Assembly (NCBI GenBank): GCA_964199315.1
Contig: OZ116708.1
Location: 6,448,001-6,512,000 of the forward strand
Origin: Orbicella franksi
Taxonomy: Eukaryota
Length of the DNA: 64,000 nucleotides
Reading direction: 5' to 3'
Below the pieces are notes generated by a model that saw only the letters and a program-made list of their open reading frames with translations, ran no database searches and had not been told where the DNA came from. The position numbers and the translations under genes are program-made. This document shows positions 3,531-64,000 of this stretch, in pieces (position 1 is the stretch's first letter; each line of letters begins with the position of its first letter).

Positions 3531-3680
3531 AATATAAAAATTTTTCTCGTTGTTGTGCGCTCCTATGCACAGTTAAAGAATGAAGTTTATTGTTATCAGA
3601 TCAAGGAATGTTTACTGGATGTTAGACTGTACCTATATGCCCATTACAAACATAACAACAAATAAGGCAGAGTCACTTAC

Positions 3681-3956
3681 GTTCGCAGCTTTTTTGATTC
3701 CCTGAAAGATGATAACCAGGAAAGCAGCTACATCGAGAAGAACCACCATAGCTCTTACAAATCTGGTCACATCCTCCGTTGCCAGGGATACATCCATTGC
3801 ATTCTGTCTTCTGATTACTACTTCCGCTGCAGGAACGCCCCCCGCATTTTGGGGAAGGACTATCACATTTGCGATACCGGGTCTTGTACCCATTTGAGCA
3901 CTGAGTTTGGGCCCAGCTTGATGGCTGCCATGAACCCCATTTGCCATGTACTGGCG
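3681..3956 (-). CDS. Gene A exon 2: TSP1 + EGF-like
   Basis: Frame not in ORF track: PVHGKWGSWQPSSWAQTQCSNGYKTRYRKCDSPSPKCGGRSCSG...CIPGNGGCDQICKSYGGSSRCSCFPGYHLSGNQKSCE; ctag acceptor, gtaagt donor. Confidence 0.85.
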
Positions 3957-6900: not shown

Positions 6901-7985
6901 TGCACAAACGGCACAAAGTGGCTAATTAACAACTTCGATCTACTTTTGAGATTTATATAGGCAAAAATTAAAGTTCTGTATAAAGAAGAGTGTTGGATTT
7001 TCACACTATCGATCGCCAGTTGACGATTTGTTTCGTTGTTGTGTATATTACGAACGTTCCTCACTCAAAACCCGGCGGAATTGCAATGAATTTCAAACAC
7101 CCTTAGACGAAAAGGGCCTCGTTTACTTTTAAGCCTTGGTCAAACGGTGCATGATAGGCGATCGTAGTTGAATGATTCTCCCCGAATTTTCACCGACTAT
7201 CATCAACTATCATCGACTATCATGCACCGTTTGACCAAGGCTTTACAGCTGCTGGTCATAATAGGTCAATACTGGGTGATAATTCTGCTCGTGTTGGGTT
7301 ACAAAATCGTTTATAACCAGGCTGTATATCCTAATCACAAATATCTCCTGCGATTGCCATTTATGGGACAGCTGATCAGGGCTAACTTTTTCATCACTGA
7401 ACACCTCCAAGCCGGAATACTGATCAATACGGGACCAAATTTACTGCCAAAACGTGGCAATCAATGTGATGTCATTTGGTGGCTTACATTACATCTTATT
7501 TAATGTTCCTTGTAGCCCAATCGAGACCCTTTCCTTTATGTTTCTGGATACAATAAATAATTTAAACACATACAGTGCAGTACAATAAAATATCAATCAG
7601 GAGCAGGGTTGGCACAGTGGTGAGAGAGCTCGCCTCCCAACAAAGTTGCCCTTGATCGATTCAGGACCGATGCCATATGTGGGTTGAGTTTGTTATCGGT
7701 TCTGGCCTTCGGCTCCGAAAGTTTTTTCTCTGGGTTCTCTGGTTTTCCTCCCTCCACAAAAACCAACATCTCAAAATTCCAACTAGGATGAAGGACGCAC
7801 GTGAATACTATAAGCTAAGGCTGATGTGGCTTTCTCCCTGAATATTGTAATTGATTGAAGGAATAACAGGCATACTCACAAGAACCACCTCCACCTCCTT
7901 TTCCACACGCAATGACGCAATTCTGGTTGGTACCAATTGCTACTGCCGCTAAAACAAGAACGGTGAGCTTGACAAAAGAGCTCAT
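3681..7985 (-). CDS. Gene A: secreted protein, signal peptide + Gly linker + TSP1 + EGF (3' end unresolved)
   Basis: join(7985..7880,3956..3681); phase-1 junction T|CG gives MSSFVKLTVLVLAAVAIGTNQNCVIACGKGGGGGSSPVHGKWGSW... Confidence 0.8.
3975..4105. repeat. (GAT)n and (AGTAAC/AAT)n simple repeats
   Basis: Direct reading. Confidence 0.9.
4215..4369. mobile_element. MITE
   Basis: Imperfect ~30-bp TIRs catccccggaatcccaggggcaactaatcggga / tcccgactagcagcccctgggccttcgaggat. Confidence 0.6.
7132..7242. mobile_element. MITE with TTA TSD (PIF/Harbinger-like)
   Basis: Perfect 26-bp TIR agccttggtcaaacggtgcatgatag; tta on both flanks. Confidence 0.8.
7600..7855 (+). mobile_element. tRNA-derived SINE (degenerate) in gene A intron 1
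   Basis: ggagcagggttggcacagtggtgagagagctcgcc (A box), decayed B box, body atatgtgggttgagtttg...ttttcctccctccacaaaaaccaac. Confidence 0.7.
7880..7985 (-). CDS. Gene A exon 1: signal peptide
   Basis: ATG, hydrophobic LTVLVLAAVAIG, gtgagt donor in phase 1. Confidence 0.8.
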
Positions 7986-8058
7986 ATTTATTTCACGGAG
8001 CTTCGTGTAACTTGAAAGAGGAAATGGCACAACCGCTGCTAATTATGCTCCCTGGCTG

Positions 8059-8089
<31 letters not shown>

Positions 8090-9318
8090 GGGAAAAACCC
8101 CGAAGCGTAAAATGAGCTATAGATAAGTATAAGTTAAAAGTGAAATCTGTCATTACTGCACATTAAGTGTTTTTTCAAGGACGAAGAGTTTCGGTTTCCG
8201 AGCTTCCAAAAGTACAATAAAGGCGCTTTTCATCTGGATGATTCCGGGAACTTATCCAAAGAATGTAAGTAGATGTATGCAAGTTGGTATATTATCCTCG
8301 TTCTGAAAATCTACCTGGGTGAGTAAAAAGAGAGAATTTAAACTTAGTTTGTTGACGATTTTGCAGCTAAGGAACCCTTTACTTGGGATAGTAAAGATTA
8401 CGTTTCGCTGGTAAAGCACTTAATGGTTCTTGTTAAATTTGCATAGATAATTAAAGTTTCAAATACCAAATTCTAAATCAGCAAACCAAGTACGCAGGTG
8501 AACGACTCAAGTAGTTTAAGGCCTGGCTCAAAGGCTTTTACCGGTGAAAATAATTTATTAGTTATATTTCTGAAGGTATAAATGGCAATGGAACCAGATT
8601 TAGCACACAGTTAGGTTTTGACATCCTGAATATAACAAGAGATATAGCTACTCAACCAGAATTCCATATGGCACACAACCATAATTAGGATAGACTGGCG
8701 AGAAAAGTTACTGACGAAAACATTCCTTTAAATGACAAATGAATTTGTCTTGAGTAATGCTCTAGGCCAATACTGTACCGTCTCCTTTTTATGCATATTA
8801 AACATCAAGTCATGGTCCTATAGCTATTACTTTCTACCAAATCGTTGTTTCTTCCCCCTTTTTAACTCGATTCACTCAAAGAGCTGATATAATCTTGTTG
8901 AAACATCTGCTACAAAGCAGAACAATAGTTAAAGCCGAAGCTGAATTCTCGAAACACTTTCGGCACGCTGCTCTAGATAACCACGAAATTCATGACTAAT
9001 AATAATTCGATTTTTACCGAGCAGCACGTGGTTCATTAATAGCAATTTCATTAGCTACATTCTTGAATCGTAATATAACCTAATTACAGAAATAAAAGTT
9101 AAAAGACGAGTCTTTAAACCATAGAAGCCAAATATTCTTACCTCTGAACGATAGTCACAGATTACAACGTGAGCAGAATGTCTAAATTCCTCACGGTAAA
9201 ATCTTGGGCGAATACTAACGTTTGAGATTCAGGTGGGCTGCTTTTTGTCTCCGCGGTAATGTTGCAGTGATTATTCATTATTATTCTATAACAATACTAC
9301 CGTTGTTCTATACACCAG

Positions 9319-9519
9319 ACGCAAGTCTGATTTGTTGTGTGGGCGTTCTGCAAGATTTGCACTTTCTGTATCAACAGTCTATTCTGTAGAACTTGGTATG
9401 CTAATTTCTTCTATTTTCATTGTTGGCACAGGAACGTCTCTAGAAGATCATGAATGCTATCTTGTGGATATGTACGCTGTCCATGTTAACGCCACAGAAA
9501 AGTGCACAAGTATACCGGG
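9319..9519 (+). CDS. Putative 5' exon of gene B (hydrophobic stretch plus Cys-containing segment)
   Basis: ...FALSVSTVYSVELGMLISSIFIVGTGTSLEDHECYLVDMYAVHVNATEKCTSIPG then gtaagt; ends in phase 2, not directly compatible with exon 11087. Confidence 0.4.
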
Positions 9520-9837
9520 GTAAGTTAAATTATTACTTAAACTATTACTTAAATTAAAATATGAATAAGTAGTACAACTAGGAACCACGTCACCTAATTG
9601 TCTGAAATAAGAAAGACCAACATAACCCAGTAATATTCCTCCTTGAGATATTTGTTGGGTCTTTGTCCCTTTATTAGTGCGGAAATTCGTATGGGAATAA
9701 TGAATACTTTTTACTCACTTTGACCTGTTAATTTATATTACCCGTTGCATATCTGTCAGTAGATTCGAAACACAGGGCTGATTTGTTAAAAATTGGTGGC
9801 ACGTTTATCTTGCATTTGATTGATTACCCTTAGTTAA

Positions 9838-9928: not shown

Positions 9929-11086
9929 TTAAACTGCGAATTTATTTTCAATCGTAACAAATGATCGATGAAGCTACATACCTCTCAAAGTGACGTTGTT
10001 GTCGGCAACAATCGCTTAATTTAATCCGTTGACTAAACTTTGCTCAAGAAAATACCATTTTTTTCGAATTTAAAGGTACCGATCCTAGTTTTTCGAGCAT
10101 CTCAACTTTTTCTGTTCTTGTTTTTCTTTATTTTTCCAAGAATTGCTCAATCGAATTCTAAAGGGATGAACTGGTCTGCATCCGTTCAAGTCGTTGACAA
10201 ATAATGAAACACCCAGACACCCAAACTGACAATACTGGCTTTAGAAAACGAAATCATCGCAAAACGTCTAAGCGAATACTTACAGGGTGCATTGTACAAA
10301 ACGTTTTCGATCAAGTGCACTGCTCAATGAAGTGCATGCGATTAAAATCGACGTTACCGAATTTTCTTATACTTTCATGGCTTGAACATATACAAGCTTG
10401 ACCAAGAAAGATACGGGCATGCGACGGTATACGTGACGGTGACCGTTACAACAAGTTTGAAAAATAATCTGGCTGCACAAAAGCGTCGAGAATGTTGATG
10501 ACAGAGCAAAAAAATTGATAAGGAAAATTCGTGCATGTCGAAGTAAACAACGCTGCTACTAAAACTGTCTGACTTTACATATCGATACTTCATCTGTAGT
10601 TAAACTGAAAAAAGGCAAAGATTTGAAGGAAAACTAAGAGTAAAAGCGTTCATTCTCCTGTTTACTGCATAATATTGCGGAACTTGAAGTCTATTCGGTG
10701 GATTTCAAATTAAGCCGGGAATTGGAAGTCGCTCAAAATCACACATAAATAATTGTGTAAATGTGTCAAACTTGACCCAATCAACGAACACTGGCCACTT
10801 TTCCGGACAGTGACGACGTCAACAGACAGAATCAGTGGCTTAGTAGTTCAGAGGTTCATCTGAGCTAGGACTGCAATTCACGTAACAGTTCTTAGCAGTT
10901 TTTAACGTTCTGAAACTTCTTTGATCGCCTAAGATCGATTCCTTAACGTGTGTTTGGAATTTACTGAGACCCACAGTCAACGTGTCAAAACATAAGTGCC
11001 GCGTACTTACTAACCTAAGTCCATCTCTCTCCACTTATATGATAACGTTTGTTCCGTTCCTTTTTCTTCTCTCTCCCTGTTCTTAG

Positions 11087-11480
11087 CCACGTTATGCAGT
11101 CCACCTTGTTTACTGGTGACAAACACATCGGACATTGTTGCCATTAACTACACAACTGCAGCTGCTCATTCTATTATCTCGGGTCTAACCAGAGCTGTTG
11201 CCATAGATGTCCATTTTAGCTTGGGTTACATATTTTGGAGTGATGTAACAGAACAAAACATCAAACGCTTCCACATTGACGTAGCAAGCACGACGACAAT
11301 TGTCACTGGCATTGGAGTTTGTGATGGACTGGCGGTAGATTGGAGGACATCACAGCTGTACTGGACTGATACGACAAATGACAAAATATCGATATCAGAT
11401 CTTAATGGCAATAACCAACGCAGCCTCGTTTCCTCGGAACTGGAGGAACCCAGAGCAATAGCTCTGGACCTCGATAATGG
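11087..11480 (+). CDS. Gene B: YWTD propeller 1, first half
   Basis: IFWSD, CDGLAVDW, LYWTD, EPRAIALD; ttcttag acceptor, gtatgc donor. Confidence 0.9.
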
Positions 11481-11912
11481 GTATGCATTATTGTTATTAA
11501 TGTATCTTTTTAGAATTTATTTCTGGTTACAGAAGCTAAGATTTTTCTCGAACTAACAAACTTATGTCACTCCGCTCAATCACTTAAGAATCGGTAACTC
11601 GAATATCCTAAATTTATACAAGGGCGTGATTTCCTTTACCTTAGATGTAATAGGGTTATAAAAGATATGGTTATTTACTGATTTTAGGGGAAAAAAATAC
11701 AACACGTTGCTTTACCTGGATTATCTATGTTTTACAATTCTTTCCTTCGTTAAGCAATAACGAATTGCATATGTAGGATCATGATTATTGGTTCAACTTC
11801 TCTGGACATATTGATACGGAGTGAAATTTGTGTTCCTTCGCTGTTCTCGTATCATTCAGGACAATTGGAGGTGTGAGTTATATTTAGGGAATCTTTTGCT
11901 GACATGCAATTA

Positions 11913-11947
<35 letters not shown>

Positions 11948-12822
11948 CTTTCATTGAGGTTAATGATCTGGACTGACTGGGGAGTTAACCCTAAGATTGA
12001 AAGAGCTTCACTAACTGGAAATCAAAGGCTCGCCATTGTAACAACAGATCTTTCCTGGCCTAATGGTATTGACCTCGACAAAGGAAACAAACGAATATTT
12101 TGGGTGGATGCGGGAACTGACAAGGTCGAATCGGTCGATTACAATGGCAACGACAGAAAATTACTTTTTCAACAGAGTGGCTTACATCCGTTTGCAGTTG
12201 CATTAATTCCCCCTTTCTTATTTTTCACGGATTGGAATACGTATGACGAGTTTCACCAACTGGACGCCTCGACTGGGGAAGTGCTTCGAAGTTATAGCAT
12301 CAATGATGGGCAGCCTATGGGCATCGTACCGTACGACAGCTCACGACAACCAGCTGGTATTTAAAAGGAAATTTCATGTCATGAAAAGAGCTCGTCTATT
12401 TTGCAGTGATTGATAAACTGTCTGTCTGCCTGCCTGACCACCTGACTGACTGACTGACAGACTGACGGACTGACTGACTAATTCAGTGATTCGTTGATTG
12501 GATCGATTATATTGAAGTGATCGATAAACGGCCTGCCTGCCAGACTGACTGCCAGACTGACTGCCAGACTGACTGACTGACTGACTGACTGACGGACTGA
12601 CTAATTCACTGATTTGTTGATTGGGTCGATTATTTTGAAGTGATTGATAAACTGCCTGCCTGCCTGCCTGTCTGCCTGAATGACTGACTGACTGACTGAT
12701 TGACTATTTCACTGATTCGTTGATTGGGTCGATTGATTGATTTTTTGAATGACTGTTTGATTGATTGATTGATTGATTGATTAATTGATTAAATGATCGA
12801 TCGATCGATGAATATCAAGTTT

Positions 12823-12855
<33 letters not shown>

Positions 12856-12989
12856 GAATGGATGGATGGATGGATGGATTGTTTGTTTGGTTGGTTGGCT
12901 GGTTGGTTGTATATATTGATTGATTGACTGATCGATTAACTGATTGATTGATTAATTGACTGATTGATTGATTGATTGATTGATTGATC

Positions 12990-13026
<37 letters not shown>

Positions 13027-16000
13027 GGAAGGTGTATGCAAAAGCGCCAGGGTAACTCGCTTACGAGAGCTTAAACCATATTGAATCGAAATTTTGCCTC
13101 ATTAGCAGTATGATAATTTTAAGACATTTAAGGTCGTCTCTTTTAAGACATTTAAGGTCGTCTCTTTTAAGACTGATAGGGTACAGTGCATGTGCATTTT
13201 TTCTTTAAATTTTTGAATGCTTTATTCATGGGACGAGCCAATTTCGAGAAATCATCCGGTACTTCCCATTGAGGAGTTTCCTGCTCTTGCACTACTCAAG
13301 ATTGCGGCAATGTTACAACCCCTTATTATCCAATTTTCGCTTTATTAACTGTCAAGCCGTCTCTGACGGGAGGTAAAAACAAAAGAAAATTCAAACTTCT
13401 AGCTATAAAAGTGGCCGCGGTCGCTTATAACAGGTGGTCGCTGACAAGTTCAGAAGTCCCAAATAGAATGATTTGACTTAAAAACTTTTGGTGTTTTGAA
13501 AAACTGGTCGCCGAGGAGAGGTTGTCGCTTACGAGAGGTGGTCGCAACCGTGTTGTCTTCAGCGAAAGGCTTTTTTTTTTTCTTTTTTTTTTTTTTTTCA
13601 CCTGTACAACGCAACTTCACTTATTATCATCCTCATAATAATATAGAAAGATAAATACATACGTAAACTTTTTACATTGTTTCTAGATTCTATGTGTTCT
13701 AGTTCAGGAGTATATCATGTGTGTTCTTGTAGGTGTACATTATAAGCGGGATCGAGTATCTTCTCTCTCTTGTTTTAGTTAAAAGCGCTGGCGCCGATGG
13801 TTCTGCTTTGGTGGTGCTGCCTTTGGTCTGCTTTGGTTCATCAGCAATTTCGTCAATTGCTATGCTTGTGTCTAGGTCTTAATTCACTTTCGTGCCTAAT
13901 AATGTCATTTTACCATGTACACTGTTGTGCTCACTAAGTTTATTAGTGCTCACGCCATGAGGAAGCCGGTATTACTGCGCGCCATTATGCTCGTTTACGT
14001 ACATTATGTGACAAACTTTCTTTTACATTGTGTTTCTTTGAAGCTTCAAGTCCTTGTGCTGTTAACAATGGTGGATGCAGCCATTTTTGTGTCGCAACAA
14101 AATCTGGTTATGAATGCATTTGTCCTACTGGTTTGGCAGTAAAGCAAGATAACAAGACCTGCGAAGACAGTAAGTCTACTGAAAAAAAGTGGAAGCATTG
14201 CGTCTGACGACGAAGAATATAGTTAGCGATTTTACTCCATGCTACCCAGTCTAAAAAACCGCAAATTAGATCGCAACTCGCACATTAATTCAGTTCAAAT
14301 GGAAACAATTGCTTTTCGTTGCCAAGCCGGGAACAAGGTCGACTTTTTTTATACAGAAACGTAACTCCTGAATTATCTTTAACTATATTATACCCGTGTA
14401 ACAAATTTAGTATGAGCTTCTATATAAGTTAAGCGAAATTTTCAACATTTTTTTTTAAACCAGACGTTTATTCATGTTGTACTGTCCTCAACCCGCCAAG
14501 TGTAGTTTTAAATACTTCTTTGTTAAAGGTCGCCTCAAACCCATAGTCTTCACTCTTCCTCTTGAGATCCAAAAATAAGTTTGCTCTAATGACTCCTTTG
14601 ACGAAAAAGGAGAAGAATATATTAGAGATTTTGACCCTGTCAGGAGCTGTACAATAAGTATTTCTACATCACCGAGAGAAAAAAGTCAAGCCGTCAAATC
14701 AAGGTATGTGTTTTCATTTACTTCTTGTAATTCTTATCGTAGAAGTGAAGAAGTTTATCATTTTTGCTGACGCCGACGCCAAATCGACGAATATTATTTC
14801 ACTGGATGTTAACTACTTTGTGGTACAAATTTTGTTTCGTCATCTTGGAAATCAACGCCCAATAGCTTTGGACTTTGACCCCGTTGAAGAACGTGTGTAC
14901 TGGTCAGACATAGCAGAAGGTCTCATAATTAGCGCTTTTTTCAATGCAACTGCTGTGAAAATTTTGTTTCGCTGTAACGTGAAGAGTCCTGAAGGCTTAG
15001 CCATTGACCACGTGGCAAGAAATATTTACTGGACTGATACAGGGACCAATAGGATTGAAGTGGCTCGGCTTCATGGAACAAGCAGGAAACTGCTCATCAA
15101 AGATGGACTTGATAAGCCAAGAGCGATAATTCTGGATGAGAGAAATGGGTAAGTTAATCGGATGCCGTAAAATTGGAAGGTCGTAAAGTAATTCTTTCAG
15201 CATTGTTCTTTCTGTGAGGTGAAATCAGCCGGCGTGACATACGATAAATATTCGTCCCAGCATTCTTTTCAAGATAACATAGCTAATAGCATTTGCTCAT
15301 AATAGTGCAGATACTGTATTATTTGAAGCGAAATTGGTTACTAAAATAGAACCTCGATTTAGTTTAGTTGATTTTGTTTTTTGGTCTTTGTTAATTAACA
15401 CCACTTTTTGCTCTTTCACGTGATTTTGTACTTTTATTAATTGTCACTTGTAATTACGTAACCACTAGCACCTTAATCTTATTTAAAGCTCGTTTTTATT
15501 CAAAAATTGTAATAAATGAAGGTCTCTGACCGAAACGTTTTTTACTAAATTTTTTAATCTATTTTACGTCAGAAGTTGTCCGTCCTCACAATTTTTTAAC
15601 TTTCTATGTATGTATGTATGTATGTATGTATGTATGTATGTATGTATGTATGTATGTATGTATGTATATACGTTTTTTTTTCTTTCAGCTCGTAACCACT
15701 CCCAGACAGAATAATCTTAGCGAATTCAAAAAAAAAAACTTTCCTGCTAGGTTTTCGCCTTGATTCGGGCGAAGCCCGAATCCAGGCTAAGCACACAGCG
15801 ACCTTAAACCAGGGAGGGCTCCGTCAAGGCCAGGCTGGGCACATGGCCCAATGACTGGTCTATCTGCTGGGGGCTTGCTGGGGACCAGCTGTCAAAAGCA
15901 GGCGGGGGAGGGTGTCTTGTACTGACACCCCCAACTAGCTAGAATTTGGGTTTTCAGTGTTAAATAAGATTGTAATTGACTGTGTTTCTGGGTATTTTAC

Positions 16001-17016
16001 TCAGTTGTTTGACCTTTTTTGAGGCTTCTGTGTTGACATGGCACTCTGCTAGAGTGGTCCATGCCACGTGCATGCGTGTGGGGCCAATCTCCTAGCCAGG
16101 GGGGTTGTCAGAGGACTTCTGGCCGCTGGAACTGTCTCTGAGTCAATGCGGGCATGTTTTTGCGAATTCGGTTAGATCTATTTTTTCACCCTAATTGAAT
16201 GATACCACTACTTCAATATTTAAAATCAGCCATCAGCCGATCGATAATTTGTCCAAGGAGGAAAAGCTTTTCATACTTAGGCATTCATTCAACTCGGATA
16301 TCGATGGATGTATTAACCTCTTGTATTGCTGCGCGCCCCTTGTGTTCTTGCCTTATTCCGTGTTCAATCACAAAATGTTTCCGTACTCTTTGACGCTTTC
16401 AGCACGATGTACTGGACAGATTGGGGCGCCAGTCCAAAGATCGAGATGGCGGGGATGGATGGTTCAGCGAGACTAGCCATTGTAACTGGAAACCTTGTTT
16501 GGCCAAATGGACTTACTATCGACCAAACGACAAACCGTCTCTTCTGGGCTGATGCCAAACTAAACAAAATTGAGACATCAGACCTTACTGGAGGAAATCG
16601 ACAGCTTATATTGTCATCTGGGAACAACATCCATCCTTTTGGCCTAGTTGTGTACAACAGCATGCTGTAGTGGACCGATTGGAATATCTTGAGCGTTTCA
16701 AGCTTCAATTTAGCCAGTGGAAATCAGGATGTGATGGTAACTGGCCTGCAACTGCCGACCGACATTCACGTGTTTGATCCTTCCCTAATATTTTCAGGTT
16801 AATTATTGGATTGCTTAGTCTTTAAACTATTAACAGTACATAGTATATGAACCTAAAATGATTGCTTTCTTTTTGCTAATGTCATTTAAGAGTTGCTATG
16901 CACTAGTGTAAAACTTTTTTTAGCTTTTATAATTACCTGACATCAGGAAAGTTAGAAAAGCAAATGACAAAATACAAAGGATCCAAAAATCCACCTGTTT
17001 CTTGTTCTGTCTGTTT

Positions 17017-17052
<36 letters not shown>

Positions 17053-20000
17053 TTTTCTGAATCGAAAGTTACACAGATAATACATTTCTGAATTTTTCTA
17101 CCATCGCGGATGAACATATCTATCTGGTATGTTGCTTTACGTTCAGAGACGCAGACTCTAATAGATCAGCGTCAAAGACATTGCAATTGTAACATAAGTC
17201 CGAGGCTCTCAAGACTAAGCTCTAAATTTTCCACTTCTTCATTGCATTCAGATCTCCTCTGGTAAAAAGGGGAGTTTAAAGGGTTTTTTTTTTTTGGTTC
17301 TCTGGGACCTTGAAGTCTTGTTAGAAGACTGAGATATTGAACGTTGACTATTGCATCGCTTAATTTCTATGTCATTAGGACCCCATAATTGTTCTCAAGA
17401 CAATGGTTTATGCAGCTATTTGTGTCTTCTAAAGCCAGGGGGATTTCAGTGCGCATGTCCAACGGGTATTGCACTCAAGCCGGATGGGAAAAACTGTGAT
17501 TATGGTAAGGATGCTCAAGTGTTTCCGCAATGAGTTACTTTTTGTGTTCCCCTACATTTGTGCTAAGTTTGAGCGAAATCGATGATTTGAGCTGCGTCAC
17601 CACCTGTATTTTTTCTGCTTGGTTTTCTTATGGACACATTCTGAAACATCCTAGACTATCTAATGCGACAGATATTCCATGATTTCTTTACTGATCACAC
17701 CTTTTTTCTTTTCTTTTTTTTTTTTTTTTTTTTTTGGCTTTGTTTTTCCCCCATTAACTCCAAGGTTTGTTTTATAAGAGAGGCTCTGAAAAATTTATGA
17801 TCTTCGCTGAAGCCGATTCCGGAGAAATTTACATGGTTCCTCTCGCGGTAGAGGAAAATCCTTGCCTTCCCCTCGAAATCAACACAAACATCTCAAGACC
17901 GGTGGCAGTTGATTACGATCCAGTGGAAGGAAAGATTTATTGGACAGATGTTACCTTAAAACTGGTGGCTAGGGCCTTCCCCAACGGGTTTTCGGTGGAA
18001 ATCATTGCGCATAATAATGTGGAGACACCTGATGGGCTGGCATTGGATTATGAGGGAAGAAATATTTACTGGACTGATGCAGGGACAAGTAAAGTTGAAG
18101 TAGCGCGATTAGATGGGTCATTCAGAAAGAGCCTTATCACATCAAACATTGACAAGCCAAGAGCTTTAATCCTTCATCTGGTAGAGAGGTAATTCGGAGA
18201 TGCAGAGTTCTAACTGATTGCTTTTAGTCCATGTTATATTGACTATCATCTAAAATGAGCTCACTGCGTAATCTGGTGCAAAAGCTGCAGCATTTGGGAT
18301 AAGTATGTTGAACGTTATTATAGAGACACGAGGTTGTTCAGGCTGGAAGATAAACCACTCGTAAAATACATACGCAACTAGTTATATAACATCTTTCCTC
18401 CAGGTAGTTTCTCTCTGTAAACTTTCTTCAACTCACATATCATGACGGTGTTTGTTAAGTCGTTTGCAAAAAAAAAAGGACTACCCAACCAATCATATTC
18501 GAGTTGTTTTAATTATCAAAATGTCAAATTTTATCCTTCTAAGTTAATTAAATAATCGATTTTGTCACTTATTTTCTTAAGTCTTTTGGACCTTTATCAT
18601 GTTAATCTTTTCGCAGATTTTCTTAATTAACGTCATAATGCGCGAAGTCGTTTAGACAGAAATCACTACAAAGTCATTAAAATCCCAGGGAAAAAAAATC
18701 AAAATACAAATCCAGTATCCTGTTTATTTATGAAAAATTTGTTATTTAGAAAGATGTACTGGAGTGACTGGGGATCATCACCAAAAATTGAACAAGCCAA
18801 CATGGACGGTTCCGCCAGGACAGTTCTCGTTAGCTCCGGACTTGTGTGGGTAAATTCACTAGCCCTGGATTTCGAAAACAGACTGTTGTATTGGTGTGAT
18901 GCTAGCCTTGATCAAATAGAAAGAGTTGACTTCCAGGGAAACAACCGAGTGCTCATACTTGATTTATCAGCTGATAACCTGCATCCGTTTGGACTGGCCC
19001 TAACTGACAACGTTCTGTACTGGTCTGACTGGAACAACCAAAGTGTCCACAAATACAATATGACCTCCTCTCTCAGTGAAGTATTGGTTCAGGGAATGGG
19101 AAGGCCAATGGAATTGCATATTTATGATAAGACAAAAATCTTTAACGGTAAGCCAGCATCGATTTGATAAAATGTACATTCCCTGGGTGTCCTCCCGGGG
19201 GTCAAGCGCTGAACTGTACAGGTAGAACGAAGTGAGTTGGTGCCCATTGACAGTTCACAAAGTATGTTTTGTTAAATTGTTTGTTCATTTATTAGATGAA
19301 CAAAATACGAGAAACGTTTTGGAAGTGTTATCTACCAAGTCTCTCTTTAGGTTAAGTCCTCACGCTCATTTCAAACTTATGAAACTAAAACAAAAGTGCC
19401 TAAGTAATAACCTACTGTAATTATACGCGACTTTCATTGCTACTACAGCGTGTTGTGTGTACGTACTGCCTCGCAACTCTTCTTACCCAGTCGTGAATTT
19501 TTTTGTCCAGTGTACGTTTCAGGCTTCAATGTCTGTTTCAATCTGTATTTACGGTTCTAACAATCTTATATCTTCCACGTTCTAGAGTTAAGCGATACAT
19601 TTGGAGGAGAGTGTGGAAGACATTCCGTCTTTACTCGCGTCTTCCTTTTGAACTTTGAAAGAAAAAAGAAAAAAACATAGGGACCATAGAATTAAAAGGA
19701 AAAAGGGCAAGTCCCGCTTTAGTCACGCGTTAAGTTCGTCGTGAAATATATGCATTTTTTAAACGCAAAGCCAAGACAAAAAAATAACAAGGTAGCTCTC
19801 TCTTATCTCATAGGGTCAACCAGCTGTTCTCAACTTAATGGACACTGCAGTCACATCTGTCTTCCAAATCCACAAGGACATCAATGCTTCTGTCCAGAAG
19901 GAATACTGCTGAAGTCTGATGACGCCCTCACTTGTGAAGGAGGTACTACTCCATGCTGACTGTCAAATGATGCTCGAATATTCCTGCGTGCAACTTTATT

Positions 20001-27593: not shown

Positions 27594-27626
<33 letters not shown>

Positions 27627-30600: not shown

Positions 30601-31315
30601 CGGTCTTCATTTTTGGTTTTAAATGTTCTATTACATCTAGGGAGAACTCTAACCTGTCTAACAAATAGTCTGTCTTTTAATACTGTCCAAGTTAAACTGT
30701 TCACTAACTAGTGTACATATATTTTTTTAAGAAAATAGGTCACCTGACTTTACAAAAATCAGAAAAATTAAATATTGTAGGTACCGTCTTGAAAGGCAAG
30801 ATAAGAATATACGGTGCACTTACCTTGCTCGCAGTTTAATAGCTTATTAATAGCTAATTGATAGTTAATTAACAACTTAGCAAATTTCTTGCCTTCGTTT
30901 TGCAGCATTTGCATTAGTATACAAGTAGAATTCTACTAATAGTAATTAGAACACAGATGCTGACACTACTTTGTTTTGTTTATTCTACTCTTTGTATTAG
31001 TGAACTGTCCGCTTGGGTATTTCTTTAACACCACTGGTTGCCAGGCATGCGCAGTGGATGAATACCAAGATCAAGAGGCCCAGACGTCATGTTTATCCTG
31101 TCCATCCGGTACAACTACATTTGGACAAACGGCATCAAAGTGGCACGAAAATTGTCAAGGTTACTTGAAAATGAAGCTTTAACTTGTTTTATTCTGTTAA
31201 ACAACACATCTCTTGGCTAGAGGCAATTTCAAATGCAAGGAAAACGTGATCGCATGATTTTAAGATATGAAACCAATAATTTTTTTACGATAACTACAGA
31301 AATTCTCGCGCGTTT

Positions 31316-41478: not shown

Positions 41479-41671
41479 CTACAACTCTGATTGTGTAGCT
41501 GCGTTTTCGTAGCCTCTGCCTCCATTCTGCTCGTCTTGTGAAGATCTTCTCTCTCCTAAGCGTAATTCGCCCTTGAATCCTGGGTCACCAGGGTGCACGC
41601 TGTTCTTCCACCGGCAAGGGTTTTGTTTATTAAGAGAAGTTGTGCGATTAAAGCAGCATTGGTTGCGAAAC
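41479..41671 (-). CDS. Gene C: cytoplasmic tail, last exon
   Basis: Pyrimidine-rich cacgtag acceptor, phase 2 matches TM exon: RFRNQCCF...[11 protein letters not shown]. Confidence 0.7.
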
Positions 41672-44600: not shown

Positions 44601-45220
44601 CAATCTTACACTCGATGCACCCGTCACTGTTAGTCGTTCCACGTCGGAGGGTTGTCATTCCCTTGCCACATGTTTCGCAGCTGGCCTGGCCTTCCTTGTC
44701 TTGGTAGCTGCCTTTACCACATAGTTTACAATCGAGGCTGTTTTGGTCATGAAATGATCCGACAGAACAAAGCACTGAAAGTCAAAACAGGCGTTAACTG
44801 TTTGCATTATTACGGCAGCTCACATGACCAACCGTAAGTGCTTGAAAACAAAAATCTTTCCAAGGGTAAACATTACAATCAAGCTCATTAGATCTATAAA
44901 GGATGTTACAATTAAGCCAACGTAATTCTGGCCCAATCCTAACATATTTTCCAGGGTGTATTTCCACGGCGAGTTGTCGTAGTAGCCACTTGTGTTACAT
45001 TGGCAAAATAGTCGATGAAAAAATCAATAAAATTACCCACCAATTATGCAGCACGCATAATTAGGTTTATGTAACACGAGAAAGGGTCATTGTTAAGGAT
45101 ATCTAGTGGGCGGAGAACAATTGGCCTTACGGGTTGTATCAGATTCCTTTATAAAAGGTGTGAAGACATGATCATCGCAGTAATGCACGCAACTTAAGCA
45201 GTTGCGAAATTAAAGCCTGA

Positions 45221-45260
<40 letters not shown>

Positions 45261-50465: not shown

Positions 50466-50499
<34 letters not shown>

Positions 50500-56400: not shown

Positions 56401-59400
56401 CAAAAATGCGATCAAATTAATAACAAATGTTAATTTGAGGAAATATACTAACGGCAATATCCCTTTTTATTAAATGTTTGTCCCTTGGTACAGAATTGTT
56501 TAGGTTCTGAGATGTTGAATGAATTTCCATCAGCTACGAAGTCAGTGCCATTGATGGTCAGACTGAGATTGCCGTTGTCAACTGCAGCTTTTATCCGACT
56601 GCTGATGTTTTTGGCAATTTTTGTGCCCTCCTCGCCAATGAAGATCTGGCCTTCTTTGGTGTCATTTGCTTCAATGCCATTAAGGTCAACTACAAGAGTT
56701 AAGCATTAAAATATCATTATTGCACTGAGACTCGATAATAATAGGTTGTGGCATAGATTATTTAAAGTCTTTGACTTTGTGTCTTTTGGTATCTTTTTGG
56801 TTGCCTTATGGTTAATATGTTGGCGAGAAATATTTCCAACGTGGCTGCGCTGATAGGCTAGAGACTTTCTCTCACAGCTCTTTGCTATACCCAAGAGTTT
56901 GGTTTAGGTAAAGGTGGATAAGGACAACCGGATGCTATTTAAGTCCCATCCGGCAGTATACAGATATTTCCATTCCATCCATACCACGGAAATGGGAATT
57001 AAATTAAAACCCAGTCATGAGTTAATGCCTTTAAATTTTCAATTCTCGGAAGCTACATTCTCCGTTATCAGTATAACGAGTAACGTGACTTTTTGACATT
57101 AAACCATTGCAAAGTGAGAAAAAGGTCGGTTGAACGATTTAATTTAGGCAGGGTGATTCAAAACTTGAAGTTTAATTTTCTAACTATCTAGTTTTAGGAG
57201 AACAAGTCTTTCTTCACACGCTAAACTGCAAGTTATGTAGAAAAACACTTTATTATAATCGACGCAGACAACCCTTTTGTCATTTTCAGGTGTTCAGTCG
57301 TCCCAAAAAACAAACAATTAAAATAATATTATTGACCTACCAACGATATCTAGAGTAACTGTGGTTCGTGGAATTGATCGTCGAGTTCTTCTATGATGAC
57401 CAACATCGTCTGGAAAATAATAATAATAATAATAATAATAATAACGTAAAGAGATTAAAGATTCAGGCAATTCAAATTACAGGGCTTATTCTCTACAGGT
57501 AATTATACTGAGGTACAGTCTTAGTTTACAACAATTGGATAGTGCAAGTGCGAGTGCAAGTGCACAAGACTGTAAGATGAGATGTGGCTGGACAAAGTGG
57601 TTTTCTGTCAGTCTGTGTGTGTCTGTCTGTCTGTGTGTCTGTCTGTCTGTCTGTTCAGATCTGTAAAACAAATATTTAATAAGCAAGCTCCCAAACTGAT
57701 TTGGTGCAACGTTTAGATCTATTTGAAAACATCCAGTAAGAAAGCGTGCACTTATAGCTGCACTTCTCGGACTTAGTAGAACAACAGTTCTGTAGTCCAA
57801 GCCGTTCACGTAATGTTGAAGCAAGCAAAGAGAATGTACATCTTCTTTTCCGCAGTGTTCTCTTAAGAAACTAGACAAAAATTTTCTCTTTGTAAGTTCG
57901 AGTAATGCAAACATTCTTGAAAGTTTGGAAGAACTCGAAAAAGCACATGCCGTTCGTGTTCCTTTTTGCATATTTCCACTATGCAAAAACTTGATAGCCT
58001 AGGGATTATGCAAATCCTAATAACAGAGGCTTTGAGCAAACAATTAAGAATAAAAATCAGCGATAACATTTTCGAATGACGTTTCGATGACCCGTGCACC
58101 ATTCGAAATTATTATCGCTGATTTTTATTCTTAATCTATTATGAGCCTCCCAGTACCCACGGAGTAAGTCGGACTTGATCTAGCTGTTCGCTTCCATTTT
58201 CGCCTAGTCTTGGGTTTTCACCAGGCCAGATCGATTCCCCATGACTCATTACCATGTCGTGAATAATAATACCTACGGTAGAATATTACATTATTCCATC
58301 CAATTGAAACAACGAGGATGTTTCTTGTTTCTTAAAATAATGAGAGCTTTGTGTAATGTTGCCATACCTGCTGAACGCCTTCTCCTACTGATAACAAAAT
58401 CAACCGCAGCGCACGTTACTTTCACATTTTTTGCCTTGCACTTGTCCTTGAGTGCTGGATCTTGGCAGACCTCTTTGAAGAAAGACTCGTTTAACAGTTG
58501 GATAAAGTTCTGTTTTATTTGAGCCTGGGCTTCTGGCGTATTACAGTCACCATAGTAGTAGTGCAAATCCATTGCCATCCTGACATCGTTGGGGCGGTAT
58601 ACCTCTACAAAAGGGTGGACAAACAAAACGAGTTGGGTCTTCCTTACATTATCTGAGGGTCTGGATGGGTTTTAACTGAACTGATAGCAGAGAATAGGTC
58701 AAGATTTGTGAAAATATGAAAAATATGCGAGGTTTCTTTTTTTTCTTTTTTTAACTAAGAACTGCGATCTCAGATCAGCAAAATTTGCCAATAGTTGAGA
58801 ATGAGCTGAACTTTGACTGATAACTAAATAAAATCGCCCAAAATGTGGAAAGCTTTTAAAACACGAAATGGCGAGATTACGAAATGGCACTACAAGTAAG
58901 AGTCCATGTGGGATATGGGTGTCTGTAAGCGTTACCTTTACAATTACTGAGAGCTAACCACTGTCAAGGCAGTAATATTTAGGCTAATCTGAGTTCTATT
59001 TAGGCTAACTGGAGCCATTTCGCCATTTCGTTGCTTAAAAACGCCCTGAAATTTAACTGATAACTGAGTTCCCACCATTTCATCTAGACCGTCTTAAAAA
59101 AAAAATTGTGGCTTGGTAAATATTGACAGAATTTCATTTCTAGTGTCAAGCACTTTTATAGACCATGGGAACTGCGTCATAACATTAGTTTTTAAAACGC
59201 AAGTACAACCGCTAGACTCAGGCCCATAATACCCTTCTCCGTTGACATTTAATTAATTTTACTTCAATATAAAACATGATTAATTCAATCCACCATTTGG
59301 ATTACACTACATTGTTATGTCCTTAGCAAATAACATAAATCAAGATAAGATTCCAGAACGGTAAAAAAGAAAAACTATGAAAGAACATATTAACATTGCG

Positions 59401-62400: not shown

Positions 62401-64000
62401 TCCTCCGTTCCCAGAGAAACCATGTCTGCATTCGAAAGAGCAGACAGTTCCACTATCTGGGGAAAATGTACACATGTGCGGGTAAATAAAACCATTCTGA
62501 GGCGCACTTAGTGAAGAACAGGAACGTACTGAAAAGAAAATTAGGACATAAGAAAATAAATTAATAAAGTAATTAATCAATTAAGTAAATAAACTAATTA
62601 ATTAATAGTTGTTTCAAGTCTTTAAAATAGTTTACAATCACACCGATGTTAATGAGTTTTCTCAAATGATAATAATTTACGCGAAAACTCTGAAATATTC
62701 ACTGCAATGGACCCATTAGCCTTTTAAGTCCCAAGCTGAAACGTTAGATTTTCTAATGTCATTTGGTGGTAAATCGTGACAATATCACTTAGTTGGTGAT
62801 TTCGTTTACTTTCGTCACGTCCTACGTTATTTGCATTGTAACCAGAATTAGATTTTGATCACTCCATAGGATTAATGGGGCTTTTCCAATGAAAGTGATT
62901 TTTGTATCATTTTGCAAAATGCAGTCACGTGTCGCAGTAACCAGTAACTGATCCTCGGGAAGGTAATAAACTAATAAACAAAAAAAAAAAAAGGGAAAGC
63001 TATGCAGAGGGAAGGTTTTGACGGTTGTCAATGGCAACACTGATTAGTTTAGACTACTGTTTCCAAGATATGGAAATCTGAGACGTAGCTCCTTTACGAT
63101 ACTAATCTAAATAGGTTTGGGAATTACAAATTTAACGGGCTTAAGTTAGGAAGTTAAAGTTTGATGCAAAAAGGGAACATAACGTTTACGAACTACTGGT
63201 CGCTTACTTTTACAGGTCGGAATCGATCCGTTCCAGTACCCGGTAAGATGGCCCGGTTTGTGAAGGCAGGTGAGGATCTCGGATCCCAACAAGTTATATC
63301 CATCTTTGCATCTCATTTGACATGTGCAGCCGAAGCTGTTGTCACAGTCTCCCACTAGAAAGCCGTTTAATGGAGGAAACAATGTTTGGCATCGCACAAC
63401 TGTAGAACAAATTACAAAACAACACATGTAACAGCGAGTCTTTCTAACTCGAAAATGGTGATGTCTGGAAATGCCCTTATGGTACAATATTGACCTGCAT
63501 ACTGTTTAGAAGACTCGCGCACACAGAGAGACAATTCGTATTTAATGTGACTTAGTGTGTCGCTGATGGTCGAAAAACAAAAAGTTATGGCCGGTGTTTC
63601 CCGAGGAGAGATCTGCCACAAAATAATGATCAATCTAAATGCCTACTTAGTTGCCAGCTACATCTATATTGAAAACTATCGCAAAAAGCCTTCCTTACGC
63701 GGAATGTTTTGGTTAATAATAAGCAATAGCAATTTGTTTTGCAGGGAGATCTATCATTACTTAGTAAAAAGCTTACTTTCGACCGTGACGTGGAATTTGC
63801 AGATTCTGTAATTTCCTGCTGCGTCACTTGCGTTGTAAATGACCTCATGTCGTCCTTCGTAGAACTTGTTCCCGGAAGGAACACCATGTTTCGTAACATT
63901 GGTTGCCATGCCAGAGTTATCTGTGGCAACCACTACAGGCCAGTTTACAGTGGTATAGTTTTTAGCCCTGTCTGCGTACCTTCTGATGTCACTACTGGGA
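41479..64000 (-). CDS. Gene C: Uninflatable/SVEP1-like giant type-I membrane protein; 5' end beyond the window
   Basis: 21 exons in window with consistent phase and no stop found (~2240 aa): HYR-Sushi2-HYR2-Sushi-furin module-GCC3-EGF21-pentraxin-EGF2-Sushi-furin module-GCC-TM-tail. Confidence 0.92.
42221..42840 (+). pseudogene. Decayed transposon accessory ORF: SAP-like N-terminus + SWIM zinc finger
   Basis: [15 protein letters not shown]...[43 protein letters not shown]...[21 protein letters not shown] (CxC..CxH with one Cys lost); frameshifts. Confidence 0.75.
42841..43882 (-). pseudogene. Decayed THAP-domain transposase N-terminus
   Basis: [19 protein letters not shown]...VRFFHFP...KWLKAC...LCSLHF (THAP C2CH, FP, W); stops and frameshifts; no DDE domain retained. 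Confidence 0.75.
42919..43305. mobile_element. MITE nested in the THAP ORF
   Basis: 15-bp perfect TIR caggggcacccaacg; atttct direct repeat on both flanks. Confidence 0.75.
44201..44309 (-). CDS. Gene C: transmembrane exon
   Basis: [24 protein letters not shown]; phase 1-2. Confidence 0.85.
44610..44774 (-). CDS. Gene C: juxtamembrane GCC2/GCC3 repeat
   Basis: [40 protein letters not shown]. Confidence 0.9.
45266..45338 (-). repeat. tRNA(Thr, GGT)-like pseudogene inside a dispersed repeat (~45165-45420)
   Basis: ggcttgatagctcagttggtagagcactgcaccggtatcgcagaggtcatgcgttcgaatcccgttcaggcc; A/B boxes, imperfect anticodon stem, adjacent (CA)n. Confidence 0.65.
45961..46428 (-). CDS. Gene C: second furin-site module (SEA-like, inferred)
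   Basis: ...[15 protein letters not shown]...QRSKRAV...[16 protein letters not shown]. Confidence 0.85.
46984..47175 (-). CDS. Gene C: Sushi
   Basis: [14 protein letters not shown]...[11 protein letters not shown]...FVCG...W...IPTC. Confidence 0.9.
47661..47900 (-). CDS. Gene C: 2 EGF repeats
   Basis: [49 protein letters not shown]. Confidence 0.9.
48577..48736. mobile_element. Degenerate MITE
   Basis: caggagcgtagctag ... ctggctacacccatg, imperfect TIRs. Confidence 0.4.
49218..49844 (-). CDS. Gene C: pentraxin/LamG-like domain
   Basis: FTIALYLR...GTLFSYSV...[11 protein letters not shown]...VYVD...GGGWVVLGQ...[12 protein letters not shown]. Confidence 0.9.
51033..51894 (-). CDS. Gene C: Ca-binding EGF repeats 14 (second half) to 21
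   Basis: Tandem DIDDC..PC.N.G.C.D....Y.C.C..G..G..C; phase 0-1. Confidence 0.95.
52754..54291 (-). CDS. Gene C: 1538-nt exon with 13.5 Ca-binding EGF repeats
   Basis: Frame translated by hand, open from [10 protein letters not shown] to [10 protein letters not shown]; ORF track shows only the last part. Confidence 0.95.
54775..54936 (-). CDS. Gene C: GCC2/GCC3 repeat 3
   Basis: Not in ORF track: [42 protein letters not shown]...C. Confidence 0.9.
55450..55611 (-). CDS. Gene C: GCC2/GCC3 repeat 2
   Basis: [34 protein letters not shown]. Confidence 0.9.
55938..56099 (-). CDS. Gene C: GCC2/GCC3 repeat 1
   Basis: [41 protein letters not shown]. Confidence 0.9.
56453..56689 (-). CDS. Gene C: first furin module, C-terminal part
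   Basis: [10 protein letters not shown]...[20 protein letters not shown]...[14 protein letters not shown]; phase 1-1. Confidence 0.8.
57341..57409 (-). CDS. Gene C: 69-nt exon with a second furin site
   Basis: ttttccag|[23 protein letters not shown]|gtaggt; phase 1-1. Confidence 0.75.
58368..58604 (-). CDS. Gene C: first furin module, N-terminal part
   Basis: LHYYYGDC...IKQNFIQLL...[11 protein letters not shown]...SRRRRSA. Confidence 0.85.
59636..59824 (-). CDS. Gene C: Sushi (SVEP1-type)
   Basis: [27 protein letters not shown]...WVCG..GTW...FPDC. Confidence 0.9.
60281..60526 (-). CDS. Gene C: HYR
   Basis: [14 protein letters not shown]...[12 protein letters not shown]...[11 protein letters not shown]...CQFTITV. 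Confidence 0.9.
60854..61105 (-). CDS. Gene C: HYR
   Basis: [15 protein letters not shown]...[12 protein letters not shown]...[18 protein letters not shown]. Confidence 0.9.
61420..62220 (-). mobile_element. 5'-truncated L2/CR1-group LINE (RT C-terminus plus 3' UTR) in a gene C intron
   Basis: [12 protein letters not shown]...[11 protein letters not shown]...LQNTAARIV...LGW...F.Y.A..EWNTLP; 3' gggccccactgaaaacc stem-loop-like end; limits approximate. Confidence 0.85.
62331..62528 (-). CDS. Gene C: Sushi
   Basis: [17 protein letters not shown]...CSFECRHGF...CGNDGNW...C. Confidence 0.9.
63208..63399 (-). CDS. Gene C: Sushi
   Basis: [10 protein letters not shown]...[19 protein letters not shown]...YWNGSIPTC. 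Confidence 0.9.
63777..64000 (-). CDS. Gene C: HYR (cut by window edge)
   Basis: [14 protein letters not shown]...[29 protein letters not shown]. Confidence 0.9.

Follow-up and report, generated by a model that had tools for sequence, protein, structure and literature searches.

The window analyzed here is a 64,000-bp stretch of the 497-Mb genome of the coral Orbicella franksi (C11:6448001-6512000, where C11 is contig OZ116708.1 of assembly GCA_964199315.1). Gene finding by six-frame open reading frames (ORFs) and Pfam matches shows that it contains exons 1 and 2 of one gene of a kind called C-type here, the complete gene B, and most of a second C-type gene, gene C (Table 1). These are transcribed leftward, rightward and leftward, respectively, and this orientation pattern, which an initial annotation of the window had reported, is real. 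As that annotation also held, B and C draw on one kit of modules; at the sequence level both encode large type-I membrane proteins. When 180 kb of flanking DNA is inspected alongside it, the window as a whole is best explained as a slice of a tandem array in which two related kinds of giant type-I membrane glycoprotein genes alternate; the probability of this reading is estimated at about three in four.

Table 1. Features of the window and copies of its marker segments in the O. franksi genome
Feature	Position	Strand	Evidence or remarks
Left-hand C-type gene, exon 2: TSP1 repeat + EGF ("gene A" of the initial annotation)	3680..3956, in ORF 3676-4122	-	Pfam FXa_inhibition E 3e-8, TSP_1 E 0.016
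Left-hand C-type gene, exon 1 ORF block	7818..8047, ATG 7985	-	Signal peptide, then C-G-x-GGGG motif
Divergent intergenic region, candidate bidirectional promoter	7986..9449 (1.46 kb between ATGs)	.	Promoter activity putative
Gene B	Coding sequence 9450-32941	+	Pfam Ldl_recept_b, FXa-type EGF, Sushi, HYR, Ephrin_rec_like
B exon 1 (ATG, signal peptide)	9450..9519	+	Phase-1 donor CGGG/GTAAGT
B head: three YWTD beta-propellers, EGF after each	11086..19950	+	Pfam, ORFs, colinear orthologues
B head exon blocks	11086-11520, 11966-12340, 14040-14192, 14760-15149, 16380-16799, 17378-17506, 17797-18180, 18751-19140, 19816-19950	+	
B body: about 8 Sushi/CCP + 4 HYR exons	20225..29208	+	Pfam; paralogy to gene C exons
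B HYR exons	21748-22062, 23716-24189, 27171-27530, 28894-29208	+	
B CCP-like module, opens common cassette	29372..29632	+	No Pfam match; blastp to C 59631-59927, 36% identity, E 2e-13
B stalk, SEA-like, multibasic loop RRRRK, 163 residues	30101..30589	+	No Pfam match; AlphaFold2 model
B Ephrin_rec_like (TKE)	30964..31179	+	Pfam PF07699 E 2e-8
B transmembrane exon	31770..31902	+	24-residue hydrophobic stretch; phase-2 donor
B final exon: cytoplasmic tail, NPTY, ends QSEV + stop	32689..32941	+	In-frame phase-2 join to transmembrane exon
Gene C	41479 to beyond 64000	-	Pfam Sushi, HYR, Ephrin_rec_like x4, 13+8+2 EGF, Pentaxin
C final exon: cytoplasmic tail, ends QSEL + stop	41479..41683	-	Phase-2 acceptor; in-frame join
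C transmembrane exon	44201..44309	-	Ends phase 2; joins 41683 in frame
C fourth Ephrin_rec_like (terminal cassette)	44560..44781	-	Pfam PF07699 E 1.4e-10
C terminal SEA-like stalk, RSKR site	45962..46423	-	hhalign to B-stalk profile; paralogues
C second CCP-like module (terminal cassette)	46976..47233	-	tblastn 31-32% identity to B 29372-29632; no Pfam match
C two EGF domains after pentraxin	47632..48003	-	ORF; kept in all C-type paralogues
C pentraxin exon	49213..49854	-	Pfam Pentaxin E 4e-14, Laminin_G_3 E 2e-11; conserved exon in C'
C EGF arrays, two large exons	51001-51942 (about 8 EGFs), 52601-54322 (13 EGFs, several calcium-binding)	-	Pfam
C three Ephrin_rec_like-type cysteine-rich exons	54770-54964, 55418-55630, 55933-56106	-	ORFs
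C internal SEA-like stalk, split	56451..58671 (58294-58671 with RRRRS; 56451-56705)	-	Match to B stalk; conserved in paralogues
C CCP-like module	59631-59927	-	blastp to gene B module
C HYR exons	60264-60605, 60774-61118, 63760-64000	-	Pfam HYR E 2e-11
C Sushi exons	62242-62580, 63149-63505	-	Pfam Sushi E 7e-6
A-type exon, all copies	C11, 6.37-7.64 Mb		14 full-length matches
B stalk, all copies	C11 (6.15-8.27 Mb), C10		18 matches, 17 on C11 and 1 on C10
B first propeller, all copies	C11, 3.6-7.8 Mb		18 primary matches, 51-100% identity
C terminal stalk, all copies	C11 (6.40-7.61 Mb)		17 matches, 14 of them on C11

The leftmost feature, an exon encoding a TSP1 repeat and an EGF domain, was initially annotated as a separate small secreted gene (A) and a possible soluble partner of the products of B and C. 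No such soluble partner exists, and of the proposed three-gene locus only B and C stand as genes of their own. The exon is bordered by a consensus acceptor (tttctag) at 3956/3957 and a phase-1 donor (GAAC/GTAAGT, the slash marking the exon end) at 3680/3679, and because phase-1 splice sites bound the coding part, the stop codon that follows ...SCERK in ORF 3676-4122 is intronic. Positions 31-307 of a coral metatranscriptome contig (run X4, 504 nt, depth 46) match 3680-3956 and nothing beyond it, and its remaining 30 and 197 letters match nowhere on 3400-9399; a similar RNA piece covers the exon in a second run. In four paralogous units an A-type exon lies upstream of a C-type gene on the same strand, and in each it is followed by two Sushi exons, HYR, three Sushi, HYR, three Sushi, HYR, and then the exons found at the right end of the window. 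The next sushi exon is 0.4-1.5 kb away in three of these units and 15 kb away (outside the window) in the unit to which the window belongs. Both sites could be located in two units, and there the sushi acceptor is phase 1, matches the A donor and gives a read-through join. The RNA contigs end at 8047, the outer border of the exon 1 ORF block, and the same exon 1 with signal peptide and CxGCGGGG-type motif is present in Actinia (L043, ATG 2120, minus strand) and Actinostola (L040, ATG 6099, minus strand). The splice sites, the bounds of the RNA contig and the in-frame exon series of the paralogues thus identify 3680-3956 as exon 2 of a C-type paralogue whose body lies to the left of the window, down to C11:6411215. 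Between these two exons, the segment 7640-7780 has a summed RNA contig depth of 839 and 3210 in two runs, compared with 10-60 in its surroundings, and shows many loose ends; this is probably a transcribed short repeat of high copy number that lies either in the first intron of the C-type paralogue or upstream of the gene.

Gene B begins with a signal-peptide exon that joins in frame to a phase-1 acceptor (ttcttag/CC) at 11085/11086, and the joined N-terminus parallels that of an Acropora millepora LRP4-like protein (P0182). The three propellers of the head are recognized by Pfam (Ldl_recept_b, E 2e-15 and 3e-18; FXa_inhibition/EGF_LRP2, E 7e-15), as are the Sushi (E 5e-10 and 2e-7) and HYR (E 2e-18, 4e-15 and 5e-17) exons of the body, and the orthologues in Oculina, Nematostella, Actinia and Actinostola are colinear with it. 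The EGF array and pentraxin of gene C are absent (Pfam). LDL-A repeats were not seen either: the six-frame listings hold no such cysteine-rich ORF within 9450-32941, and Pfam finds none in the Nematostella orthologue P0159. Joining the transmembrane (TM) exon to 32689 gives a tail of 84 residues that contains NPTY and ends in QSEV; a diverged B-type paralogue (L035) has NPAY in this position and also ends in QSEV. The ORF at 32289-32477 was considered as a tail exon and is probably not one, since its acceptor is phase 0, the TM exon ends in phase 2, and the direct join of the TM exon to the final exon is in frame. Gene B is thus a chimera of a three-propeller LRP4/5/6-style head and a Polydom-like body.

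Gene C continues for about 20 kb past the end of the window, where C11:6512219-6532651 contains, in order, three Sushi exons, HYR, three Sushi, HYR, two Sushi, TSP1+EGF and the signal peptide. It therefore has a TSP1+EGF exon of its own (C11:6524752-6525096), which the first inspection missed. The complete C-type order is signal peptide, TSP1+EGF, about 11 Sushi and 5 HYR modules, the CCP-like module, the SEA-like stalk and three TKE modules, followed by about 21 EGFs, pentraxin, two EGFs and then the cassette once more. The EGF arrays are unmistakable in Pfam (EGF, E 9e-92 over 13 stretches; EGF_CA, E 4e-32), and the TKE exon of gene B is 50% identical to C 55933-56106 (blastp, E 3e-8). Joining the TM exon to 41683 gives a tail of 67 residues that ends in QSEL. 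For both genes the tail junctions rest on splice-site phase and conservation in paralogues, not on reads. The protein ends with the cassette and TM helix and has no long C-terminal Sushi tail; a VWA-like block is absent from the conserved C-type exon series from the signal peptide onward, within which some small ORFs were not scanned with Pfam. Because of its pentraxin exon and about 23 EGFs, gene C is Polydom/SVEP1-like, in this case a membrane-anchored protein. A 191-residue open frame at 61625-62197 (minus strand) lies in the gene C intron between Sushi and HYR exons; it has no Pfam match, is outside the conserved C-type exon series and may be a fragment of a mobile element.

The two genes share a common end, which consists of the CCP-like module, the SEA-like stalk, TKE, a TM helix and a short tail ending in S-x-V/L. 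Profiles of the B stalk and the C terminal stalk, built from paralogues in the genome, match with an hhalign probability of 91% (E 9e-7) over 132 columns, with four cysteines and the basic motif in register, and the B stalk is nearer to the internal stalk of C (30% identity over ~80 residues, E 1e-6 to 4e-5 by blastp/tblastn). All three carry multibasic sites of the furin type, RRRR/K in B and RRRR/S (internal) and RSKR/A (terminal) in C (the slash marks the predicted cut), and an R-x-[KR]-R-type motif is kept in 13 of 14 stalk paralogues. The paralogous stalk, the furin-type sites and the QSEV and QSEL C-termini, the last from final exons that join in frame, were all part of the initial annotation and are confirmed here.

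The stalk has no Pfam family, the SEA family (PF01390) gives no match to it at E <= 0.1, and the G/SVVV autoproteolysis motif was not found in the stalk alignment, in which the multibasic motif fills the loop. An AlphaFold2 model of the B stalk from a 14-sequence alignment (pLDDT 79.5, pTM 0.75) has the arrangement beta-alpha-beta, a low-confidence loop with RRRRK, and beta-alpha-beta. In an exhaustive VIA structure search the six best matches are all SEA domains (Z 7.2-8.8, root mean square deviation 3.0-3.5, 96-114 residues), although a Z of 8-9 is near the background ceiling of the tool. These are MUC16 SEA5 (Z 8.8), residues 375-522 of the ADGRG6 ectodomain (Z 8.6), a mouse MUC16-like SEA (Z 8.3), TMPRSS6 (Z 8.1), a second MUC16 entry (Z 8.0) and a type II protease SEA (Z 7.2), and they are followed by Trop2, SorCS2, dystroglycan and PCDH15. 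Among reviewed AlphaFold models, weak matches (E 1e-2 to 3e-2) are found to several proteins that bear SEA domains, namely ADGRG6, TMPRSS7, TMPRSS11D, IMPG2, enteropeptidase, agrin and MUC13, together with matches to ZPBP1/2 (E 4e-4) and the SCUBE2 spacer (E 1e-2). A profile search of PDB sequences with the stalk gave nothing meaningful, and an ESM Atlas feature search gave scores of <=0.81, one row being a SEA-domain cluster, which serves as a lead only. The weak match of the C stalk to Pfam DUF7637 (E 0.044) was dropped after a whole-genome scan with that family came back empty. The modeled fold is thus SEA-like, a ferredoxin-like alpha/beta sandwich predicted to lie next to the membrane, and it is called SEA-like rather than SEA because the VIA scores are close to the stated background.

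A profile search of 1.84 billion representative sequences found 177 stalk homologues at E <= 1e-3. The long cnidarian ones include a Nematostella LRP4/LRP6-like protein, in which the stalk just precedes Ephrin_rec_like, and proteins of Actinostola and Exaiptasia; the other long ones are SVEP1-like or uncharacterized proteins of sea urchins, starfish, brittle stars, acorn worms, amphioxus and molluscs. A homologue search with the Nematostella stalk region returned only itself. The vertebrate-type SVEP1 (P0185) does not match the stalk profile, so the stalk is not claimed for vertebrate SVEP1. When aligned with six coral stalks, about 16 of 20 distant homologues have a multibasic motif at the same loop, and it is this conservation, which reaches from cnidarians to echinoderms, molluscs and amphioxus, that argues most strongly for a cut there by a furin-type convertase, a cleavage predicted from sequence.

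The S-x-V/L ending is a family trait, though one with exceptions (see below), since it recurs in paralogues. The C-type copies next to the window end in ESKV (C'), ESQV (C'') and QSKV (C'''), another C-type copy ends in QSEV, and the Nematostella B orthologue ends in ATQV, so that the family has class-I PDZ-type [ST]-x-hydrophobic C-termini of the forms SEV, SEL, SKV, SQV and TQV, which may bind PDZ domains. The final exons of the window's C, C' and C''' also open with a motif of the type R-x-x-C-C-F. The earlier suggestion that B and C form a receptor pair on the same PDZ scaffold is borne out as far as this recurrent motif is concerned, and the pairing itself is plausible; the NPTY of gene B is an additional motif of the endocytic type.

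Comparison with known systems places the two genes among described families. Gene B resembles LRP4, LRP5 and LRP6 in its three YWTD propeller-EGF units, single TM, NPxY and terminal S-x-V (LRP4 carries both NPxY and a PDZ-binding end), and its Nematostella and Acropora orthologues are named LRP4/LRP6-like by NCBI. It differs from them in that no LDL-A was seen and in the Sushi, HYR, SEA-like and TKE modules that follow the propellers. The stalk resembles the SEA domain of ADGRG6/GPR126 (PDB 6v55) in being a sandwich next to the membrane with a multibasic motif in an exposed loop (Z 8.6), and differs from SEA domains generally in lacking a Pfam SEA match and G/SVVV, in its four conserved cysteines and in always being followed by TKE. 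The Notch heterodimerization domain, which has a furin S1 site, offers a similar comparison from general knowledge. SCUBE proteins consist of EGF repeats, a spacer, cysteine-rich TKE-type repeats and CUB. In SCUBE2 the spacer (residues 479-638) precedes the cysteine-rich repeats, and this matches the same stalk-then-TKE order; however, the structural match is weak (E 1e-2, TM-score 0.42) and structural only, and SCUBEs are secreted or peripheral proteins that have no TM helix or PDZ tail.

A further relationship is with Polydom/SVEP1. Both B and C have the Sushi, HYR and Ephrin_rec_like core of these proteins (Pfam), gene C has in addition an EGF array followed by pentraxin, and many invertebrate stalk homologues have been automatically named SVEP1-like. 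C-type genes differ from Polydom/SVEP1 in that their conserved exon series shows no VWA exon and that the long C-terminal Sushi tail is replaced by a second cassette of CCP-like, SEA-like and TKE modules with a TM helix and a PDZ-type tail after it. According to the passages on this family in a Nematostella matrisome study, the Polydom family is unusually expanded in that anemone and includes four shorter Polydom-like proteins with an EGF-Sushi-HYR-TKE core, some of them with TSP1 (PMC12549020); the N-terminal TSP1 of C-type genes is a likeness to those members. The same passages also cite Hydractinia CnPolydom (PMC12549020). On the evidence of those passages, the coral B and C genes belong with the Nematostella Polydom-like proteins (PMC12549020). 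A SEA-like stalk with a multibasic loop, a TM anchor and a PDZ-type tail were not found in the passages of that study on the Polydom family (PMC12549020). The initial statement that the arrangement is an undescribed one was therefore too strong, as these are Polydom/SVEP1-like and LRP-like mosaics, and an expanded Nematostella family of this kind is known, as described in those passages (PMC12549020).

The array itself extends well beyond the window. In the 244 kb around it the order is C''(+), C'''(-), B(+), C(-), B'(+), C'(-), where B', C', C'' and C''', all clearly diverged, adjoin the window in a single stretch free of gaps, and both gene kinds recur at least 14 times over about 2 Mb of C11. 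There are three blocks with 98-100% identical A, B and C markers, the further ones lying at about +0.57 and +0.93 Mb. About 247 kb to the left of the window, the first propeller of B is matched three times (73-82% identity) in a segment of 34 kb, always on the minus strand (C11:6168998-6203244). A mosaic B-type copy at C11:7485729 and 7504315 (plus strand) has a first propeller 92% identical to the window's B, like B', and a stalk that is 100% identical, which suggests gene conversion or unequal crossing-over between array units. On another contig, at C10:17804298-17807266 (plus strand), two stalks, one B-like (51% identity) and the other C-like (37%), share a strand at a spacing of 2.5 kb. 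A TKE exon follows each of them, and this looks like one gene that, like gene C, has two unlike cassettes in a row. Finally, a ~1.8-kb stretch that is 85-100% identical at the translated level in all frames is present at C11:6514752-6516527 and C11:6440929-6442627, in introns of two different C-type genes; as the likeness of these genes elsewhere is only 50-85%, the stretch resembles a repeat that was inserted recently.

The ages of the copies were compared by the method of Nei and Gojobori over about 2,400 codons for B/B' and 2,100 codons for C/C'. The synonymous divergence (dS) is 0.19 for B/B', with a ratio of nonsynonymous to synonymous divergence (dN/dS) of 0.32, and 0.72 for C/C', with a dN/dS of 0.25. 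B and B' align through exons and introns with 82-87% nucleotide identity, whereas C and C' align in exons only. The B copies are thus far younger than the C copies, or B has been homogenized, which does not suit a pair duplicated and co-evolving as one block; the co-evolved receptor pair proposed initially is not supported by these values. Both gene kinds are under purifying selection, as dN/dS is below 1 in every ectodomain exon compared (most values are 0.14-0.5), and diversifying selection is rejected on the same grounds. This bears on the idea that the array is a fast-diversifying recognition system, for self/non-self or symbionts, made of many paralogous receptor variants. At least 14 copies of each kind over about 2 Mb, mosaic copies that suggest gene conversion, and a TSP1-EGF exon that differs by up to 50% among paralogues would all suit such a system, and Sushi/EGF proteins take part in allorecognition in some other colonial animals. 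However, the dN/dS values, together with orthologues that are colinear and conserved between coral families and anemones, make it a distinctly improbable one.

The head-to-head arrangement at the left of the window is real, even though the gene model first drawn for its left partner was wrong, and Actinia and Actinostola show it too. The first B-type gene model of Actinia has, 1.6 kb away and on the other strand, the start of a gene that encodes 3150 residues with HYR, TKE and EGF modules. The B-type gene of Actinostola is flanked by exons for a signal peptide, TSP1+EGF (42% identity, E 3e-14), Sushi and HYR that point away from it, and this C-type series begins about 3.7 kb from the first propeller exon of the B-type gene. 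Among the B-type heads of the coral contig, eight stand head-to-head with an A-type exon within 8-25 kb; three of the eight pairs are clearly diverged from one another, and some B-type genes have no C-type partner. A head-to-head pair of C-type and B-type genes is thus recurrent and probably old, though not universal. Tail-to-tail linkage of B and C is not conserved, since the B orthologues of Nematostella and Actinia are followed downstream by a gene for a G protein-coupled receptor, with no C-type gene there. The three-gene scheme, in which A would be a small secreted ligand (TSP1-EGF) of two receptors that co-evolved, the three forming a dedicated receptor/ligand system, could draw on the true orientation pattern, on the cassette and PDZ-type ending common to B and C, and on the eight places where A-type exons stand head-to-head with B-type genes. 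It is nevertheless extremely unlikely, given that A is internal to a gene, with a splice site at either end and its stop in the intron, that it is spliced in RNA and continues in frame into sushi exons, that the B and C copies differ in age (dS 0.19 vs 0.72), and that the tail-to-tail linkage is absent in anemones.

Several observations weigh against a tandem array of cleavable, PDZ-anchored receptors, or against parts of that reading. The RNA evidence from the X4 contig is of splice boundaries, the letters of its 197-nt extension not having been seen, and two raw-read RNA runs (X23 and X24) gave zero reads on 3400-9399, which is no test of expression. For the stalk, the VIA scores near the background ceiling are joined by a Foldseek search of the PDB that gave nothing at E <= 1e-3. 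Some family members lack the PDZ-type ending, Acropora P0182 ending in SSNA and Actinia P0173 in DSQA. No C-type gene or exon was seen within 10-16 kb upstream of the B orthologue in Nematostella and one Oculina copy. Cleavage, PDZ binding, adaptor binding with endocytosis, and co-regulation would follow from motifs and from what is known of SEA domains, Notch and the LDL receptor, a step beyond the gene structures, domains, fold, motif conservation, array structure and synteny established here. For the copies 0.57 and 0.93 Mb away, an identity of 99-100% may reflect either very recent duplication or redundancy in the assembly, and the B' tail exon (C11:6563299-6563919, plus strand) and that of an 84% identical B copy (about 5184-5445 of L034, minus strand) have in-frame stops and a frameshift while the ectodomain exons are open. 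The ectodomain exons of B' are also constrained (dN/dS). These two genes may encode truncated-tail receptors or may be decaying.

These last points also belong to the possibility that much of the array is an assembly artefact of uncollapsed haplotypes or mis-joined repeats in which some copies are pseudogenes. The near-identical blocks, the copy that mixes a 92% head with a 100% stalk, the stops in the tail exons and a TGA in two propeller copies could all be understood in that way. It is an unlikely account of the array as a whole, because the diverged units B', C', C'' and C''' lie beside the window in one gap-free stretch and neighboring units are under purifying selection, and a genuine tandem array is preferred.

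If the array reading is correct, the products would probably work as follows. In the secretory pathway a furin-type convertase would cut the exposed loop of the SEA-like domain, and the cut ectodomain would then either ride non-covalently on the membrane stub, as Notch does after S1 cleavage, or be shed into the matrix. The C-terminal S-x-V/L would dock on PDZ scaffolds, and the NPTY of gene B would recruit PTB-type endocytic adaptors as in LDL-receptor relatives. The head-to-head C-type/B-type pair was probably an old unit with a common control region that was later multiplied in this coral. A different emphasis is that these are mainly matrix proteins, the TM anchor and furin loop serving to release the whole ectodomain to the mesoglea or basement membrane and the stub being a by-product. 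A single cut in a loop beside the membrane would indeed free nearly everything, vertebrate SVEP1 is secreted, and the passages on the Polydom family in the Nematostella study report that all of its Polydom and Polydom-like proteins came from mesoglea extracts and rise at the larva-to-polyp transition (PMC12549020). On the other hand, the constrained cytoplasmic motifs (S-x-V/L, and NPxY in B) argue that a membrane-bound form matters, and the cut halves of known SEA- and Notch-type domains usually stay associated, and a mainly matrix role seems somewhat unlikely, though it is the strongest of the competing views. Within the preferred picture of membrane receptors, it can be speculated that the divergent Polydom-like/LRP-like pair (~1.5 kb between ATGs in the coral and in Actinia) represents an ancient unit of two co-regulated receptors in Hexacorallia, which would act together at one PDZ-organized membrane site, and that its furin-cut SEA-like plus TKE cassette is a widespread invertebrate juxtamembrane module for force- or protease-dependent release of giant ectodomains, comparable to the Notch negative regulatory region (NRR) or the GAIN domain; this extension is rather doubtful.

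A tempting gene model is thus corrected, in that there is no small secreted ligand, and two large unstudied coral genes can be assigned to the Polydom/SVEP1-like and LRP-like families. Coral annotation should also take warning from the 2-Mb array, as automatic models in relatives fuse or truncate these genes; in the public annotation of Oculina patagonica (GCA_052425735.1) one model of 3954 residues takes in a B-type model of 1775 residues, a retroelement (RVT_1, Exo_endo_phos) and, beyond it, more B-type exons. The stalk, for which Pfam has no family, is defined as a domain with a modeled SEA-like fold and a conserved furin-type loop. It precedes TKE in the homologues whose architecture was examined (cnidarians, echinoderms and hemichordates), and homologues are also present in amphioxus and molluscs. 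Since the Nematostella Polydom-like proteins are described, in the passages on them, as rising together at the larva-to-polyp transition (PMC12549020), cleavable membrane-anchored members of this family whose tails bind scaffolds would bear on how cnidarian epithelium is attached to its matrix and how that attachment is remodeled.

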